Shown: in pieces, positions 809 through 29,600 of the stretch
Numbering within the stretch: position 1 is the first letter of the stretch
How the letters are laid out: every line of letters starts with the position of its first letter
The notes under the pieces: generated by a model
What the model saw: the letters and a program-made list of their open reading frames with translations, nothing else
What the model was told of the DNA's origin: nothing
Database searches by the model: none
NCBI GenBank assembly: GCA_021613535.1
Contig: CP075497.1
Location: forward strand, 3,410,001-3,474,000
DNA from: Adineta vaga
Taxonomy: Eukaryota; Animalia; Rotifera
DNA length: 64,000 bases
Direction: 5' to 3'
Program-made: the position numbers and the translations under genes

Positions 809-1418
809 ATGATAGAGAATATCGATGGTAATCATTTAGAAAACTATTTTGTTGTTGAAACTAAACGACATCGACCATGTTTAATATTCTATGGTTATCG
901 TTATGTTCAAGATAAAGTACAAAATCGTACGATTTATTGGCGTTGTGAAGATCGAACAAATTGCAATGGTCGTGCACATCAACTAGTCGGAAATGATTCT
1001 CTACCAATTCTTACAATTAAACATAATCATCAACCATCAGTTGATAATCTAATCATGAATGAAAAGAAAGCTATCGAGAATTTACATGGTCAACGACAAC
1101 ATCTCGATTCTAAAACACATTTATGTCAAGCAAATAGTGAGGGTAAGCGTTTTATGGCATTCTTTTTTCAAATTTTTTCATCTTTTCACATGATCAGGTG
1201 GTAATGATGAAGAACGAGGGCTAGTAGATAGAGCGAGGGCAGTGGATAAGAGAGGATGGGACGGTAAAAGAGAAAGAGAAGCAACGGATGAGGAGGACAA
1301 AATGTCCGTCCGCTTTGCTCGCAGAAGCCGACGGGTCGTCGAAGAAGGAAAGAAGCAAGTGACATATTTTATGTTTTTGTATACGTTTGCATGTATGTTT
1401 CGCTCGAGTTTCGCTTAG
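809..1418 (+). CDS. Stand-alone FLYWCH-type zinc finger protein (2 exons; intron ~1143-1197)
   Basis: Motif CLIFYGYRY...IYWRCEDRTNCNGRAH...HNH matches the FLYWCH C2H2 signature. A GT-AG intron joins it in frame to exon 2, which ends in TAG at 1416-1418. Confidence 0.8.
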
Positions 1419-2353
1419 AAAAAATATTCTTGTATACATCAAGAAGAAGAAAAAACAATAGTAGTCTGTTTTTTTTTCAATTAAATTATCATTTATTTTC
1501 AAAGAAAAGATCACACTTAATATCGATTGAATCTGAGATAAATAAGGTAAGAAGATATTCAGTGTGTGTAATATTTCATGAGTTTTTGACGTCATGGTTT
1601 TTCTAATTTTTTTTCTTTGTACTTTTGAAAACAAAAATAAAACCAGAAAATCAACAAAATATTTTGAAAGAAATTATTCCTATGAAACCACAGTATGTTT
1701 ATTTGGTAAAAATTTGACAGTAACCATTAGAAACACACATTTAAACTTCTTGTTAAACAATCATTCATGGGAAAATATACACTCGTTCGAATCGCTATTG
1801 TTATTTTTTGTTTAGACTTTTTAACTCGGTTTTACAAATAAGGCATTTTTTTGTGACTAAATTCATTCAATTTCTAGTTTAGTTTCATCTTTATCATTCA
1901 GATTTTCTCTATATTCATTCAATCTTTCATTATTCATGAGAATGTCTAGTTTTTTTTCTCAGTTTTTTTATTACACGTTTATCTGAATACTATTAATGCC
2001 ATTTACTGAGAATCGACGAGAGAGAGAGAGAAAATTCGACGTTGATTCTTTTGACCGGCTATATAAAAAGATTTTTACACGCGACCAACCGACTTGCAAC
2101 AAACTGGTACGAACAAGACCGACGTCGGCTATGCTGCTTCTTTTCCTTCAACCAGTGCGAGGTTTCTTTCGTTCGCATTTGTGTATGCAGTATGCTTTGC
2201 ACATGCATTGCGCTCGTATACTCGATAGGAACGGAAAGACAGAGAAGGAGAGAGAGAGCGAACGATTGAAAGGGTAACCATCATCACTACTATCGTTGTT
2301 GAGAGAATGCACAGAAGGGCTGGGCCCCATTTCTCGACCCCTGCATCACGATA

Positions 2354-22710: not shown

Positions 22711-25307
22711 TTAAGATGAACTGATCGAATTAAGAAGAGTTTCTTCAGGATTTGTATGAGGTCCATTTTCAAAAAATTCATCAGCATTTGTTGTATGCGA
22801 TTTTTTATTTGTATGATTCATTGAATTCATAATTGCATGAAGAATTTGTTTACTAACATGTTTATTACCATCGGATTCATGATCATTCTCTGTTGTAATC
22901 AATGGATGCGATGATTGCGTTTTCTTAATTGGAAAACTACTCTTAACCGTTGGTGGAAGTTGTTCGGATTGAGGTGTTTCATACACAGTTTGTTCATCAT
23001 TTTGATTTGTTTTATTTTTACGAGTAATCAATGTTAAAGGAAATGATGGTTGTCCTTTTTTCTTTCGATTTCCTCCTTTATCAATTAGTCCATGACTTTC
23101 TTTTGACCATTGCCAACGTCGATCAGGAAGAATATCATCGACAGAAGGTGACGTTTGTTGAAGTGGATTAAGATTTAATGTAGACGATTCTTCAATAAAA
23201 ACATCACCTTCACTTTTACATTCTTCATCTTCATCATTAAGTTCAGAATGATGTGCATGATCATCTGTTGGATGAGAAAATCTACAAGGAAAACAAATTA
23301 TTCAACAATAAAAACATGAGTTTTCATACGAACCGATTATCATCTTCGACTTTGCTGAGAATTTCTCCATCAGTACTGGATAATTTTTTTTGATATTTTG
23401 TTTTACTCGGTCTTTGTTCAACAGGTGATACGATGGTCGTTTCACATTCTTTATGTTCACTAAGATCTTTGTCAACTTCTTTCGGTGATTTATGATGTAC
23501 TTTATTTTCATTCGTTTTTTCTTCATGATCGCACTCATTTTCTTCGTCAATTCTTGATGGTAATTGTGGTGATGTTGTTTCCGATTTTGTCGGCTCATTA
23601 ATGCTTGCATTTGGTACACCATAAACACGATTATTATCTAAGGATATTGAAGTGGCAAGAGTTTTTCCTTTTTCAAGAGGTGACGTTGCTTTTTTTGTTG
23701 GTAGAATTTTTTCTTTTTCATTCGTTTTCTTCTTGATTTTCGAGGATTTCTTCGATTTATCAACGGGTAAATCTTTTTTAATATTTTCAGTTTTAACTTC
23801 AGCCACTGCGTCTTTATGTCCTTTCAACCAACGACGACGTATGTTTGGTTTTGGTACTGTTGTTGTTGTTGATGATGAGGGTTCTTTTTGTTTTTGCGGA
23901 TATTTTTTATTATCATGATGATTGGATGTACGTTTATCGTAAACTATTTCTTGACGATGTCGAGAACGAGATACACCTGTTCGATGATGCTGTTGACGCT
24001 GATGATGATGATGAGGAGGAGGAGGATGAGGATGGTGATGAGGATGACCTTGTGAATTGGTTTGAGCTAAAGAACTCATTGCCGTAACTGTATAATCATC
24101 ATCATTGGCAGTTTTTTGAGAAGGAGTTCGTCGTTTAAGAATAATATCTCCATGAGCAGGTTCCAAGACATGTGCTCCTTTTCTTGATTCACGAGTCATC
24201 ATTGGTCCTATATGTCCATCGCGATACTGTTGTGTCGGATGAATATTTCGACTTCGATGAGAACGAGTATATTGATGTTGTGCTTCATATGGTATTCTTT
24301 GCGGTGATACAGATTGTTGTAAAATATGTCTTGCTGGAGGACTTAAAGTACGATGAGAAGATGTTTGAAATGAAGATGAGATCGATTGTATGCGACTATT
24401 ATTATTGATACCAGTAGTAGTACCTAGTTTGATTGTTGATTCAGCTTGCGCAGCAGCTGCTGCTTGCATTTCAAAGGCTTTGATTTTTTCAAGTACATTT
24501 CCGTCTTTGACAGCTTTCTGTAATGTTGAATGTACACGATCTGATGCTGAGAATGCTGTACGTATTGAACGACTAAAATGAAAATGATTGTGATTCTGTA
24601 GAAAAAGAAATTATATTCTTTTATGAAACTTACTGTGTTGATACTCCTTCAGTTATAATCATTTGTTCATTAACAGGAAGAAAACCACCTGTATTTCCAA
24701 GTATAGCTTTTGGCAACAACTGACTTATAGTTTTATCTCGAATCAATGGTGAACTTGGTGAAATTGAATGAACAGATGTTGCAATATGATCATTATTACT
24801 TGGAGGTCGGACATGATTTTGATCGAATATATCATCTTCTGAAGGCATAGTTTTATCGCTTATTCGTTGTGTACTATCGTTTATTTCAGATTTCAATTTA
24901 GCATGTGGAATTGAGAAAAGTAATTGAACTCCATTATAACGACCATTGGATGGATCTCGACTATGTTGTTGATAAAATGAATTAGCATGAAGAAATTGTC
25001 GCATCTGTTTCATATCAGTTCGATCAGTTGTTTCATTACCCATCTGTTCATTTAATTTCGTTCGCCACGCAGCCCAATCATGAACATTAATTGGATTTTT
25101 ACTCGTATTATCATCGCCAGGCGAAGGTATATCAGTCATATTCCTACCAGTTCGTGTTGCTGATCGATGACGTGATGGCGATGCCTGTTGTTTACGTTTC
25201 TCACCAAAGATCAAACGTCCTTTTCGATTAAACTATATAACAGAATACTAATTTTTCATTCATCACTTACCTAACATCGTAGGTTTACTATTTCCACCTT
25301 TAGTCAT
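22711..25307 (-). CDS. Uncharacterised low-complexity/disordered protein (His/Lys/Ser-rich), ~4 exons
   Basis: Long ORFs 24630-25214, 23324-24469 and 22711-23031 can be joined by short GT-AG introns. I recognised no domain. Confidence 0.65.
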
Positions 25308-25923
25308 TGACGGTCTCTTTCGAAGAATTCTTCAACTGATTTCAATCATCATAATATGTTTGTGTCTCCTTTTCAATCTATGAAATGATTATAATCTTTC
25401 ACTATTTCGTTTTCTCTCTTTCTCTTCTAATTGATTCGTGTCAAAAGTCACTTGTATCGATCGATGATGACAACGTCAACGACGACCGTGAAGGCGGAAA
25501 GTAATCGTTTGCATACAAGCACAGCTTTGTTGACCGAAAACTTTTGAGAAGAAGACTCTCGTTCAATAGAGAGAAAGACAGAGAGAGAGAGAGAACAAAG
25601 AACGAAGATATGCATACACAGGGATCAATGTAAACATGTGCACATGTAACCCTTGACGTTCTTTTCCTCCTACTCATCCACCTTCGACTATTATTACGTT
25701 GACATGTGACTATAATCAAGACAATCAATTCGTCACATATACATATTAGTAGTTATAAGAGAAAATATATAATACTTTCGTCCTTTAGATCTTAATCTAT
25801 GCCAAACTTTCATTTCTACATGCAATAGTATTATCTCCGTTGACCTTCATCTTATTAATTTCTTTGTTTTTATAATAAAATCAAAATAACATAATAATGA
25901 TGAAAAGACGAAACATAGTCTTC

Positions 25924-26346
25924 TTATTTTCCTTGATTTGTTTGAGAGATTTGTTCTGGTTTAAGAATACCAGCTTCTCCTGCCTTAGTTACATAATCTT
26001 GTAGAGCATGTTCAATCGCACCATCTCGACTTTTGTAATTCTTCGATTCACCTCGAAGATTTGCATCTAGTGTTGGACACCAAAATTGTCCACCCCATAC
26101 CCATTTCCATCGATAAAATGATCCACGAAATTGTGATTTACAAACTGTACCAAATGCATTCACGTCCTGACTATCTTGCCATGTACCATAATACTTTTTA
26201 TATAACTCTGAACCTACACCAAGTCCACAGGCCATCCAATTGAGAGACAAACATGCAGGTGGAATTGTGTCCACTGCTGATATATGGTGTATTACCATTG
26301 ATAAAATACATAGAATAGCTACGATACGACCGATTTTACTAACCAT
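25924..26346 (-). CDS. Secreted anti-lipopolysaccharide factor (ALF/scygonadin)-like antimicrobial protein, intronless
   Basis: A signal peptide is followed by GTW...FGTVC-x20-WCP...LRGES...SRDG...ALQDYVTKA...GIL. This matches the arthropod ALF pattern GLW...LGHxC-x20-WCPGW..IRGEA.TRS.SG...A.DFV.KA...GLI. Confidence 0.85.
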   Translation of the reverse strand: MVSKIGRIVAILCILSMVIHHISAVDTIPPACLSLNWMACGLGVGSELYKKYYGTWQDSQDVNAFGTVCKSQFRGSFYRWKWVWGGQFWCPTLDANLRGESKNYKSRDGAIEHALQDYVTKAGEAGILKPEQISQTNQGK

Positions 26347-26653
26347 TTTCGAGTAGAATTGTATTCGTTTAATAATAAACTTTACCTTTTCAACCTTTTA
26401 TATAGATTACTTCATTATACGTAGACAAGTATGCGTAAAGCGAGATTCATACATGTATGCATCTCTAGAGTTGAATTTGCATAGAATTGTATGATAATGG
26501 AAGAAGAAAAAACTTTGAAATGATTTATTTATTTGTGAAAGAAAATATGCATAAATTAATATCAAAACTTGGTTGTATTCAATTAAAAGCATTTGTAAAA
26601 TATTAAAAAAAAATAATATTTAACAAAGAGAAGAAAAGAAACGTATAACAATA

Positions 26654-29600
26654 TCACATAATTGAGCAGTTTGTTGAAACCATTTCTATTTCTTCATCTT
26701 GTTTCGATACTTCCTTTCTATTCGTCATTGTTTCATCATCATCATCAACAACATTATTTTCTTGTTTACTCTCGTCTATTTCTCGAATATTTTCCGTTTG
26801 AGATTTTATTACTGTTGATTCTTGTTGACTATATCGATGTGAATGACGTTTACCAGATGAAATACGACGAGCGCTATCAACAGTAGGTACTTTAAGTGAA
26901 GGTGGTGGCAGCTCATTGTTTGCAACTAGAAAAGTAAAGAAACAATAATCATAAAATCAATAGAAAACTATCAGAATACTTCGTGCATTTATTTTCGTCA
27001 ATGCTTTCATAATTTCACTCTTTTCTTCCGCTTGTGGACGACTATAACCACCTGTAACTGAACCAGTAACAAGTGTAACACGTGGTTGTTTTTGATGTGC
27101 TTCACATAGCCATAAAACTTTGCCTGATGGAATTAAACATTGTTTTAAACCGGTCAATTTCTCATCAGAATCACAATTCATAATCCATCGCCGTAGATAT
27201 TCATACGAATCTTTTACTTCCATATTCATCGAAGCGGCTACCTATTTGTTACAGAGAAAAAAAGAGAAATCAATTATTAATTTCTTGAATAAATGCATCT
27301 TTTACTTCAGTAAGCTTTTGTAATTCTGTTTCACCTTCATCAGTTGTTAACATTTCTAATGATAAATCACTTTGTTTTAAAAGAAGCATAATACGTGTTA
27401 AATATGCAGAACTATTGTTTAATATAAGTTTATCCGTAATTTCAAATGGATTACCAGCTGCATGCCAATTTTCTTCATTTTCACAAAGTGCACGTATGCA
27501 TAATTTTTTTACTTTTTCTGGAGGCATTTCTTCCGTTTGATTTTGTCTCTGTGCATTGCGAGCTTCTTCATCTCGTTGTCGTTCAGCTTCGAGATCTCGT
27601 GCATGATCTTGTACATCTTGTGTTTGACGTTGAGCAGACATTTGAGCGGCCATTTCTAAACGAACTAATTCTTGACCAGATTTTTCTTTTTCACCAATAA
27701 AATCCAATGCAAATAAACGAGGATATGATCGAGCTGTCATTGCTTCAGCAAAACCAGCTATTAATCGAAGAAATTTACGTTGAGTCAATTCAAATAATTC
27801 CTAAAAGATCATTTCATAGACTAAATTGATATTGAATGATTTACAAACTTGATAAGCTGCTGTTGTTTGCTCTGTAGATTCTGCTGTTGTGTGCGTATTA
27901 GATGATATTTCTTTGATTGAAGTATTCTGTTTTGGTAAATGATTTTGAATATGAAGATAAATATCTTCAAAAGCAGTTGGATTTTCAAATTGAAAATTAA
28001 CTTGTGGACAAGCCAAACTACACATGCCAACTTCAGTGGTTCGCCATTTATCTCCATTACCAAATACAGCGAGTATGACAGGTAATCGAAGTGTATTTTT
28101 AGCAAATAAAAATTCATTTCGACAAACTTCACTTTGAGTATATTCATCAGAAACACATGCAATAACAAGTTTAGTATTTTTTAAACCCTTGAAAAGAATA
28201 ACTAACGAAATTTTACGAAGAATAAAAGCAAATTTTCATACATGAACAATATCATGAAGTACACCAGATTTGCCTAAACGAGTAATATCCATCCAAACAT
28301 TCATATTACGTCCTTCAAGATAATCCTATTCACAAACACACACAAAATGATCTCTTTCAGAACAAAAAAAACTGTTCTACCTTCATTGATCGAGGATCTG
28401 CCCAACCAATTGAAGTAGCCGTTGGTTTTGTACCTGAAAAGAAAATGTCAATCATTCGAACAAAGAAATCATTTGTATACCTTTATTAACAGCATCATGT
28501 GAATTTGACCAACAATAACTAATAAATACATCAGTTGGTTGATCACGTGAATTTTGTTTACTTTTCTTATCTCCATTTTCTTGTTCAATTAGATCAACCA
28601 ATTCAATAATTCGATTATCATATCGTTTAAGATTTTGCATATTAACATAGAGTTTATCTTGTAAAGCAACACCAATATCACTTTCTTTCCATTTCGAATC
28701 TGTTCCAAATAAAAGTGGAATAATTGGTTTACGTAAAATACTTAGAATTGTTTGTAAAGCATCATAAAGATTTTTATTTTCAAAATTTTGAATTAATTCT
28801 GTTGAAATACCAAATAGAATGAGTTTTGCTTCTTTAACAATTAAATAATGATTTTCAATTTTGAAATCTTTCATTGAATCAGGTGTCCAAATTTTCAAGC
28901 CACGTTCTAAAAGAATAGGTTTTTCTTCTCTTAAAATGAATAATTAGATAATGTCAATATACTTGTAAGATCATCTTTAACTTTTCTTGGATCAACTTTA
29001 GATTCAATTTCTGCTATTGTTGGAATATGTTCAGCTGGATAGAGATACACAACATCAACTGCCACATTTTGTTTGTAAGATTTGAGATCACGTACTGAAT
29101 ATTCCAAATGTAGATCATAATTACTTTTACTATCTGGTGGAATCAATGCTTGTACTAACGAAACAAGACAGGCAGAGAGAGAGAGAGAGAGGAGTGAATG
29201 AATTAGTGTATAGAACAATCTTACAATCAGTAACAGATGCAACATGAAAAAATCGATGACATTGAATAGATGGTGATTTAAGTTCAATTGCGCGGTTGAT
29301 TAATGAAGAAGAAAACTGCCATGGTTCATTGGTACCCTGATTGAAAAAAAAAGAGGAAATATTCAATTCGAAATGATATTTTCAAGAAATGCATACAAGT
29401 TCAACACAATCTGGACATGGGAAAGCAATATCATATGTTACACCAAAAAAGGATTCATTAACGAGACCTTCAAATACTTCATGAATTAAGAAAAGTATAT
29501 TATCTGGTCGAACACCTTGTATTTTAATAACGATATGTCGATCTATGAAAATAAGAACAAACATCAATCGAAAAATAAATTTATTCAAATGTCAAACAAA

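Follow-up and report, generated by a model that had tools for sequence, protein, structure and literature searches.

Anti-lipopolysaccharide factors (ALFs) are among the best-studied antimicrobial proteins of invertebrates, and peptides derived from their hairpin are in development as endotoxin neutralisers. The family has been described as apparently exclusive to marine chelicerates and crustaceans (PMC6213531), and the lipid A site proposed for its members comprises five to six basic and several hydrophobic residues on the sheet (PMC10672452). Here we describe an ALF-family gene from the bdelloid rotifer Adineta vaga. It lies on the minus strand at positions 25924-26346 of a 64,000-nucleotide stretch of assembly GCA_021613535.1 (contig CP075497.1, positions 3,410,001 to 3,474,000), which we call the window and to which coordinates refer unless another contig is named. 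We consider it probable that this is a functional, vertically maintained A. vaga gene for a small secreted protein of the ALF/scygonadin family.

Family assignment and predicted structure

The gene is a single intact open reading frame (ORF) of 140 codons for amino acids, running from ATG to TAA at the position given by an initial annotation, which was made from the sequence and proposed an ALF homolog in an apparently non-arthropod genome. The host, a bdelloid rotifer, is indeed neither crustacean nor chelicerate. A search with the Pfam profile PF11630 (Anti-LPS-SCYG), which that annotation had suggested, matches the product over profile positions 16-96 of 100 with a score of 52.4 bits (E 6.4e-14), the gathering cut-off being 25. 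Among the sequences of the Protein Data Bank (PDB), phmmer finds the shrimp protein ALFPm3 (PDB 2JOB; E 2.5e-6) with both hairpin cysteines aligned, and HHalign comparison of the rotifer profile with Limulus ALF (P07086) gives a probability of 98.8% and E 5e-17, again with the two hairpin cysteines aligned. In the ESM Atlas, an arthropod ALF cluster ranks first for sequence features (0.93) as well as for shape. An NCBIfam scan of the protein gave no match, as expected for a eukaryotic protein. The parts of the gene and its product are as follows.

25924-26346, minus strand: complete intronless coding sequence for a 140-residue ALF-family precursor, stop codon included (ORF listing, unspliced RNA contigs, ratio of nonsynonymous to synonymous divergence)
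26275-26346, minus strand: predicted signal peptide, residues 1-24, with putative cleavage after ...ISA (sequence reading)
26227-26253, minus strand: extra N-terminal cysteine pair C32...C40 (conservation in alignment A1)
25945-26196, minus strand: Anti-LPS-SCYG (PF11630) domain, residues 51-134 (Pfam, HHalign, predicted fold)
26077-26142, minus strand: C69-x20-C90 beta-hairpin, strands S2 and S3, counterpart of the "LPS-binding domain" (LPS, lipopolysaccharide) of ALFs (cysteine alignment, model)

An AlphaFold2 model built on 19 relatives (predicted local distance difference test score, pLDDT, 85.1; predicted template modelling score, pTM, 0.75) consists of a helix (residues 37-51), four strands (59-64, 67-78, 81-89 and 98-104) and two further helices (107-124 and 130-133). 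This predicted fold, in which one helix precedes a four-stranded sheet and two follow it, corresponds to the published ALF architecture (PMC10672452; PMC6213531). The homology proposed at the outset is borne out by structure comparison: 2JOB is the sole significant Foldseek match in the PDB (E 1.5e-6; template modelling score 0.73, normalised to the target), and VIA-align superimposes the model on it with Z 12.1 and a root-mean-square deviation of 2.7 Å, aligning 102 of 102 residues, with the next rows at a Z of ~7. It is near certain that the window protein is a genuine member of the ALF/scygonadin family, and it is predicted to adopt the ALF fold.

The cysteine framework first noted in the sequence is also conserved among relatives. 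C69 and C90, with exactly 20 residues in between, are invariant in alignment A1; the loop that they bound carries a net charge of +4 and four Trp, in line with its initial description as cationic and Trp-rich. The extra N-terminal pair, C32 and C40, is conserved at a level of at least 90% among the 19 relatives of that alignment and may form a second, putative disulfide. Ahead of it, the N-terminus has the basic residues K4 and R7, a hydrophobic core of 12 residues and, just ahead of V25, a small-x-small site, features read from the sequence only. The leader is modelled by AlphaFold2 as a low-confidence helix (residues 4-22) detached from the domain. After its cleavage, the mature protein would have ~116 residues, a mass of ~13 kDa and a calculated pI of ~8.4.

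Relatives, phylogeny and selection

The rotifer profile was run exhaustively with HMMER against 1.84 billion cluster representatives and returned only 214 clusters at E <= 0.001. Named bdelloid relatives represent three families (Adineta ricciae, A. steineri, Rotaria sordida, R. magnacalcarata and Didymodactylos carnosus), and the closest named relative of the window protein is an A. ricciae protein with 74% identity. Other named relatives are Limulus polyphemus ALF and a two-domain protein of the amphipod Hyalella azteca. One further protein (P0122; A0A915KRC0), which has three relatives derived from the Sequence Read Archive, is attributed by UniRef to the mermithid nematode Romanomermis culicivorax. 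Most of the other clades derive from environmental or Sequence Read Archive assemblies. A word-based search with a 61-sequence alignment gave 18 matches and added no further phylum.

We placed 54 domain sequences (113 columns) in an IQ-TREE phylogeny, which is unrooted and does not cleanly unite the arthropod-like set in one clan. On one side of a branch of length 0.85 (support 97/99) stand all A. vaga paralogs and all named bdelloid proteins, together with the nematode-like clade; the arthropod-like sequences are on the other. The A. vaga paralogs pair with Rotaria or Didymodactylos proteins, and thus are older than the split of the bdelloid families.

The A. ricciae ortholog of the window gene is located directly downstream of a Roco gene with MBT-Roc-COR-TIR organisation and upstream of the same next gene as in the window. 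Between the two species, nonsynonymous divergence (dN) is 0.156 and synonymous divergence (dS) 0.81 (dN/dS 0.19), and the hairpins differ at only one of 22 residues. The gene is under purifying selection and is syntenic in the genus Adineta.

The nematode-like proteins (P0122, P0140 on contig L010 at 1763-2302, P0149 and P0150) form a distinct, well-supported ALF-family clade on the rotifer side of the tree. Their source may be nematode DNA or a contaminant; the neighbours of the member encoded on L010, a 7.7-kb contig, gave no Pfam match. On the arthropod side, two tandem ALF domains, each with a C-x20-C loop, occur in the arthropod-type proteins P0032 (Hyalella azteca XP_047741309.1), P0037 and P0064.

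Paralogs in the genome

The impression of a single odd copy given by the initial annotation does not hold. A profile search of the 100.8-Mb A. vaga assembly shows that the window gene is one of nine loci that match PF11630, which are distributed across all six contigs. Eight of the nine are intact, and all eight encode a C-x20-C loop and have the domain within one exon. The A. vaga paralogs share the rotifer-type hairpin described below, with its W-x-W motif. Three of the paralog ORFs are identical to NCBI A. vaga proteins, namely UJR38860.1 (locus L007), UJR29481.1 (L009) and UJR38897.1 (L005). Locus L006 (1501-1908, minus strand; C1:10998946-10999209 region) has an in-frame TGA directly ahead of the second loop cysteine and is otherwise full-length; it is probably a young pseudogene, with an assembly error or an allelic variant as possible explanations.

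The family varies in how the domain is presented. The gene at L009 (1471-2182, minus strand) is interrupted ahead of the domain by an intron of ~64 nucleotides (nt), and its product has a transmembrane segment at the N-terminus instead of a leader, whereas the L007 product (1312-1884, plus strand) carries a Thr-rich linker and a C-terminal hydrophobic tail. Thus, by these predicted segments, some rotifer ALF domains are membrane-tethered. The window gene would encode the plain secreted form, closest in design to classical ALFs.

The public models P0012 (A. steineri, 652 residues) and P0023 (UJR38897.1, 664 residues) fuse the ALF to F-box or REJ/glyoxalase-like regions. The second of these looks like a merge of neighbouring genes, because the ALF part of L005 ends at its own stop codon in the genome.

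Transcript and neighbouring genes

We compared contigs of four runs from four studies, one of DNA type and three of RNA type, with the interval 23000-28500. The DNA-type run covers all of it. The three RNA-type runs leave 24000-25760 uncovered and splice the neighbouring gene, with CT..AC joints that correspond to minus-strand GT..AG introns of 47-64 nt; these runs are therefore RNA. In each of them the ALF gene is spanned by a single unspliced contig (X1, 25836-26330; X2, 25836-26277; X8, 25888-26370). With the adjacent gene spliced in the same runs, this confirms the early description of the gene as intronless among intron-rich neighbours.

The ends of the transcript are marked by letters that are absent from the genome. 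The X2 contig carries 23 non-genomic T (plus strand) at 25836, which represent the poly(A) tail of a minus-strand mRNA, and the X1 contig stops at the same base. At the other end, the X8 contig reaches 26370 and continues into a 23-nt non-genomic tail, which we take to be the reverse complement of a SMART-type cDNA 5' adapter. The ALF mRNA is ~535 nt long, extends from 26370 to 25836, has no intron and is polyadenylated. The following elements flank the coding sequence.

26395-26404, minus strand: candidate TATA box (TATATAAAAG) that begins 34 nt ahead of the mapped 5' end (sequence reading)
26347-26370, minus strand: 5' untranslated region of ~24 nt, with the transcript 5' end near 26370 (X8 contig end)
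25836-25923, minus strand: 3' untranslated region of 88 nt, with the poly(A) site at 25836 (X2 and X1 contig ends)
25851-25856, minus strand: AATAAG hexamer, 15 nt ahead of the poly(A) site (sequence reading)

The distance of TATATAAAAG from the cDNA 5' end at 26370 suggests its role in the promoter. The mRNA of the upstream Roco gene appears to end at ~26514 (a poly(T) loose end in one run; window 26514-26600), ~144 nt from the ALF transcription start, and the two genes are on the same strand and tightly packed. Given that the Roco gene has its own poly(A) end at ~26514, Roco and ALF are separate transcripts. The ALF gene is transcribed from its own promoter.

At position 26043, three of the four runs, the DNA-type run included, have contigs with G in place of the plus-strand T. 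The change converts codon 102 of the ALF gene from AAG to CAG (Lys to Gln) and is a strain or allele difference. The exact 140-residue product was not found as a called protein in the collections searched, from which records of this genome may be missing. Other A. vaga ALF paralogs do stand on record as called proteins. The window gene may be unannotated in the public annotation, or merged into a neighbouring model.

Hairpin chemistry and proposed function

The 20-residue loops of 97 non-arthropod and 23 arthropod-like sequences were compared column by column. Common to both groups are basic residues at positions 6, 11 and 19, aromatic residues at 12 and 16, Lys or Gln at 13, Gly18 and Phe20. 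The rotifer-type loop is characterised by Gly7 (in 75 of the 97 non-arthropod loops), Trp14, Trp16 and Asp17, and the arthropod type by Pro7 (22 of 23), Leu14, Tyr16 and Lys17; among arthropod-like sequences, Trp14 was identified only in Limulus ALF. The rotifer proteins are a subfamily of their own, most members of which carry the extra N-terminal cysteine pair.

The window hairpin contains eight aromatic residues (four Trp, three Phe and one Tyr). Its basic residues are K70, R74, R79 and K81, at loop positions 2, 6, 11 and 13. Those shared by the family at positions 6 and 11 are present, but position 19 is Gln. In the phmmer alignment, R98 on strand 4 corresponds to an Arg of ALFPm3; together with the four loop residues, it brings the basic residues of the sheet and its surroundings to five, at the low end of the range quoted for the lipid A site.

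We propose that the protein is secreted after cleavage of the leader, and that C69-C90 would close the hairpin and C32-C40 form a second disulfide. The cationic, Trp-rich hairpin of strands S2 and S3 could then bind anionic amphipathic molecules of microbial surfaces (lipid A, possibly lipoteichoic acid or glucans) via its basic residues and inserting aromatic side chains. In this way the protein may act as an antimicrobial or microbe-binding effector in an animal that lives among bacteria and eats them. By analogy with characterised ALFs, we rate the chance of an LPS-binding or antimicrobial role as somewhat better than even. It is a reasonable analogy with the cyclic peptides derived from Limulus ALF that the 22-mer loop may itself have antimicrobial potential.

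Several points weigh against the reading of the gene as a functional, secreted ALF. The function of rotifer ALFs is extended to them by homology, and cleavage of the signal peptide and formation of both disulfides are likewise conjectural. The window hairpin has four basic residues and a charge of +4, compared with +8 in Limulus ALF. The basic residue at loop position 19, present in most family members, is missing from it, as are basic residues at both 17 and 19 that are found in many ALFs. The evidence of expression consists of assembled contigs, which give no strand, level, tissue or inducibility. The only published expression figure found is a mild down-regulation: an A. vaga PF11630 gene, which may be another paralog, is listed as "DUF3254" among the genes down-regulated in spaceflight, without comment (PMC12220480). 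Lastly, the loop charge of the paralogs spans +5 to -2. Because these charges vary, and anionic ALFs of shrimp reportedly bind LPS poorly, not every rotifer member need be antimicrobial.

Cysteine-free repeat proteins on high-GC contigs

A separate, well-supported clade comprises proteins of 225-640 residues with two to four tandem, cysteine-free ALF-like repeats that score above the PF11630 cut-off (P0055, P0077, P0088, P0093, P0099, P0105, P0115, P0127, P0135, P0144 and P0145). Metagenome contigs that encode such proteins have 55-66% GC (L011, 1-1578; L012, 2-1798; L013, 2-1921). At least one of the proteins, P0077, has a transmembrane segment. L011 also encodes a genuine MerR helix-turn-helix regulator (46.9 bits), which suggests a bacterial source for the repeat proteins. 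A pattern scan of 185,579 GTDB prokaryote species genomes with the repeat alignment (A2) gave 66 pattern matches, none of them a relative, one pattern only having been searched. A metagenome scan with the same alignment returned only three short contigs and added no context.

It is doubtful, although conceivable, that ALFs are an old family of bdelloids, mermithid nematodes and arthropods with bacterial cysteine-free repeat relatives, and not an arthropod invention. If they are, animal ALFs and a bacterial membrane-anchored repeat protein would share an origin via cross-kingdom transfer, in either direction, and rotifers would hold a distinct Trp-rich branch of LPS-binding hairpins. A bacterial repeat clade would make the history of the ALF domain wider than animals.

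Alternative explanations

The alternative that survives best concerns origin: the bdelloid stem may have acquired the family in an ancient horizontal transfer, whose donor was an arthropod, some other animal or a microbe, with later expansion, in place of vertical inheritance from an early protostome ancestor. We consider this unlikely, while giving it real weight. The named members of the family are patchily distributed (bdelloids, one mermithid nematode and arthropods), but names are available for only ~30 of the 214 match clusters, so the patchiness may be an effect of sampling. Bdelloids are known for extensive gene acquisition (PMC11258130); against this, the flanking genes are ordinary metazoan genes, and the ~32% GC of the locus matches its surroundings. 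The ALF domain is intronless in eight of eight intact paralogs, compared with three exons in shrimp ALF genes (PMC6213531), which would suit acquisition, yet the bdelloid clade is not nested within arthropod ALFs. The location of the cysteine-free repeat relatives on high-GC contigs, one beside the MerR gene, suggests that bacteria may be carriers. However, a very long branch attaches that clade to the arthropod side of the tree and away from the rotifer genes, and the single pattern searched in prokaryote genomes recovered no relative of the repeat.

The tree, which is unrooted and short and does not show the arthropod-like set cleanly as one clan, cannot choose between descent and ancient transfer. 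The family may have come down vertically from a gene of early protostomes, or may have entered the bdelloid stem by an ancient transfer. The initial annotation had offered either a deeper ancestry of ALFs or a horizontally or retro-acquired copy. This choice can be narrowed: recent transfer or retrocopying is disfavoured by synteny, selection, nine old paralogs and the long branch, and what stands is descent or a transfer that is ancient.

A second alternative concerns function. The fold may have been kept for a task other than immunity, for example the binding of bacterial envelopes during digestion or feeding, or transport or signalling with an endogenous lipid or nucleic acid as the ligand. 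We regard this too as improbable. Bdelloids eat bacteria, and the range of loop charge among the paralogs, some of which are membrane-anchored, suggests diversified roles; the sole published expression change of a family member is unrelated to infection. On the other hand, those hairpin positions that LPS-binding ALFs also have are conserved and strongly constrained, and all family members characterised so far bind components of microbial surfaces. The fold also resembles double-stranded RNA-binding domains, at Z ~6-7. We rejected this likeness, since it is within the range that VIA-align calls common for unrelated folds.

Contamination with arthropod DNA, or a very recent transfer or retrocopy of an arthropod ALF mRNA, would fit a short, intronless gene of a family previously known only from arthropods, but is extremely improbable and already effectively refuted: the gene is inside a chromosome-scale contig between rotifer genes, and its A. 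ricciae ortholog has the same neighbours; several independent studies have it in their DNA and RNA runs; its product is far closer to the bdelloid protein (74% identity) than to shrimp ALF (only 24%); the dS to the A. ricciae ortholog shows long residence; and a recent retrocopy is rejected because no genomic A-run follows the poly(A) site and the gene is old and syntenic. Taken together, the tree, synteny, dN/dS and the age of the paralogs exclude contamination, recent transfer and recent retrocopying for practical purposes, and the ALF gene is old in rotifers.

Significance

We retain as the preferred reading a functional ALF gene that has been maintained by descent in A. vaga. The finding adds a member to a known family and widens its range, which has gone unrecognised in the literature searched, and it involves no new mechanism or kind of system. 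Full-text literature searches found no description of rotifer ALFs, and bdelloid ALF proteins are present in public databases as "unnamed protein product" entries; their domain matches are already contained in public annotations, where they have passed without remark. An expressed, conserved, nine-member family extends the range of ALFs to a second phylum, and possibly to a third if the nematode protein is genuine. With ALFs present across bdelloid rotifers, the origin of the family becomes a testable question.

Studies of bdelloid immunity have focused mainly on genes acquired horizontally. One such study left the metazoan-type genes unexplored, and left open whether acquired genes replace or complement classical innate effectors (PMC11258130). 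The genes described here provide bdelloids with their first candidate gene-encoded antimicrobial effectors of metazoan type. In addition, the rotifer hairpins (Gly7, W-x-W and up to four Trp) represent a natural set of variants on a scaffold of pharmacological interest.

Comparison with characterised family members

Limulus ALF (LALF or ALF-L, P07086; P0079 and P0162 in our set) is 33% identical to the rotifer protein over 80 HHalign columns and belongs to the same Pfam family. The two have in common the C-x20-C hairpin with basic residues at 6 and 11, Trp14, Gly18, Phe20 and Trp21, a CP motif after the loop, and helices after the sheet. Limulus ALF has Pro7 and a loop charge of +8, whereas the rotifer protein has Gly7 and +4 and is much richer in Trp. 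The hairpin disulfide is the sole one reported for Limulus ALF; the rotifer protein has an N-terminal extension with C32 and C40. The hosts also differ, one being a marine chelicerate and the other a limno-terrestrial rotifer.

ALFPm3 of the shrimp Penaeus monodon (2JOB) has the same fold as the predicted model (Z 12.1) at 24% sequence identity. LPS binding and antimicrobial activity have been demonstrated for ALFPm3, and are proposed by homology for the rotifer protein. Shrimp ALFs (groups A-G) constitute a multigene family with cationic and anionic members, as in A. vaga, and are made as precursors of leader plus mature peptide, an arrangement predicted from sequence for the rotifer protein. 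In shrimp, an ALF gene consists of three exons separated by two introns, and exon 2 encodes the sheet (PMC6213531), in contrast to the rotifer gene, which lacks an intron. At the distinguishing loop positions, arthropod-type proteins have Pro7, Leu14, Tyr or Phe at 16 and Lys17, and rotifer-type proteins Gly7, Trp14, Trp16 and Asp or Gly at 17.

Scygonadin, an antimicrobial protein of crab seminal plasma, represents the other named branch of PF11630 and thus is in the same Pfam family. Scygonadins are described as anionic, with 17 residues between their cysteines, compared with 20 residues, a loop charge of +4 and, for the mature form, a calculated pI of ~8.4 in the window protein. By these sequence features, the window protein can be classed as ALF type and not scygonadin type.

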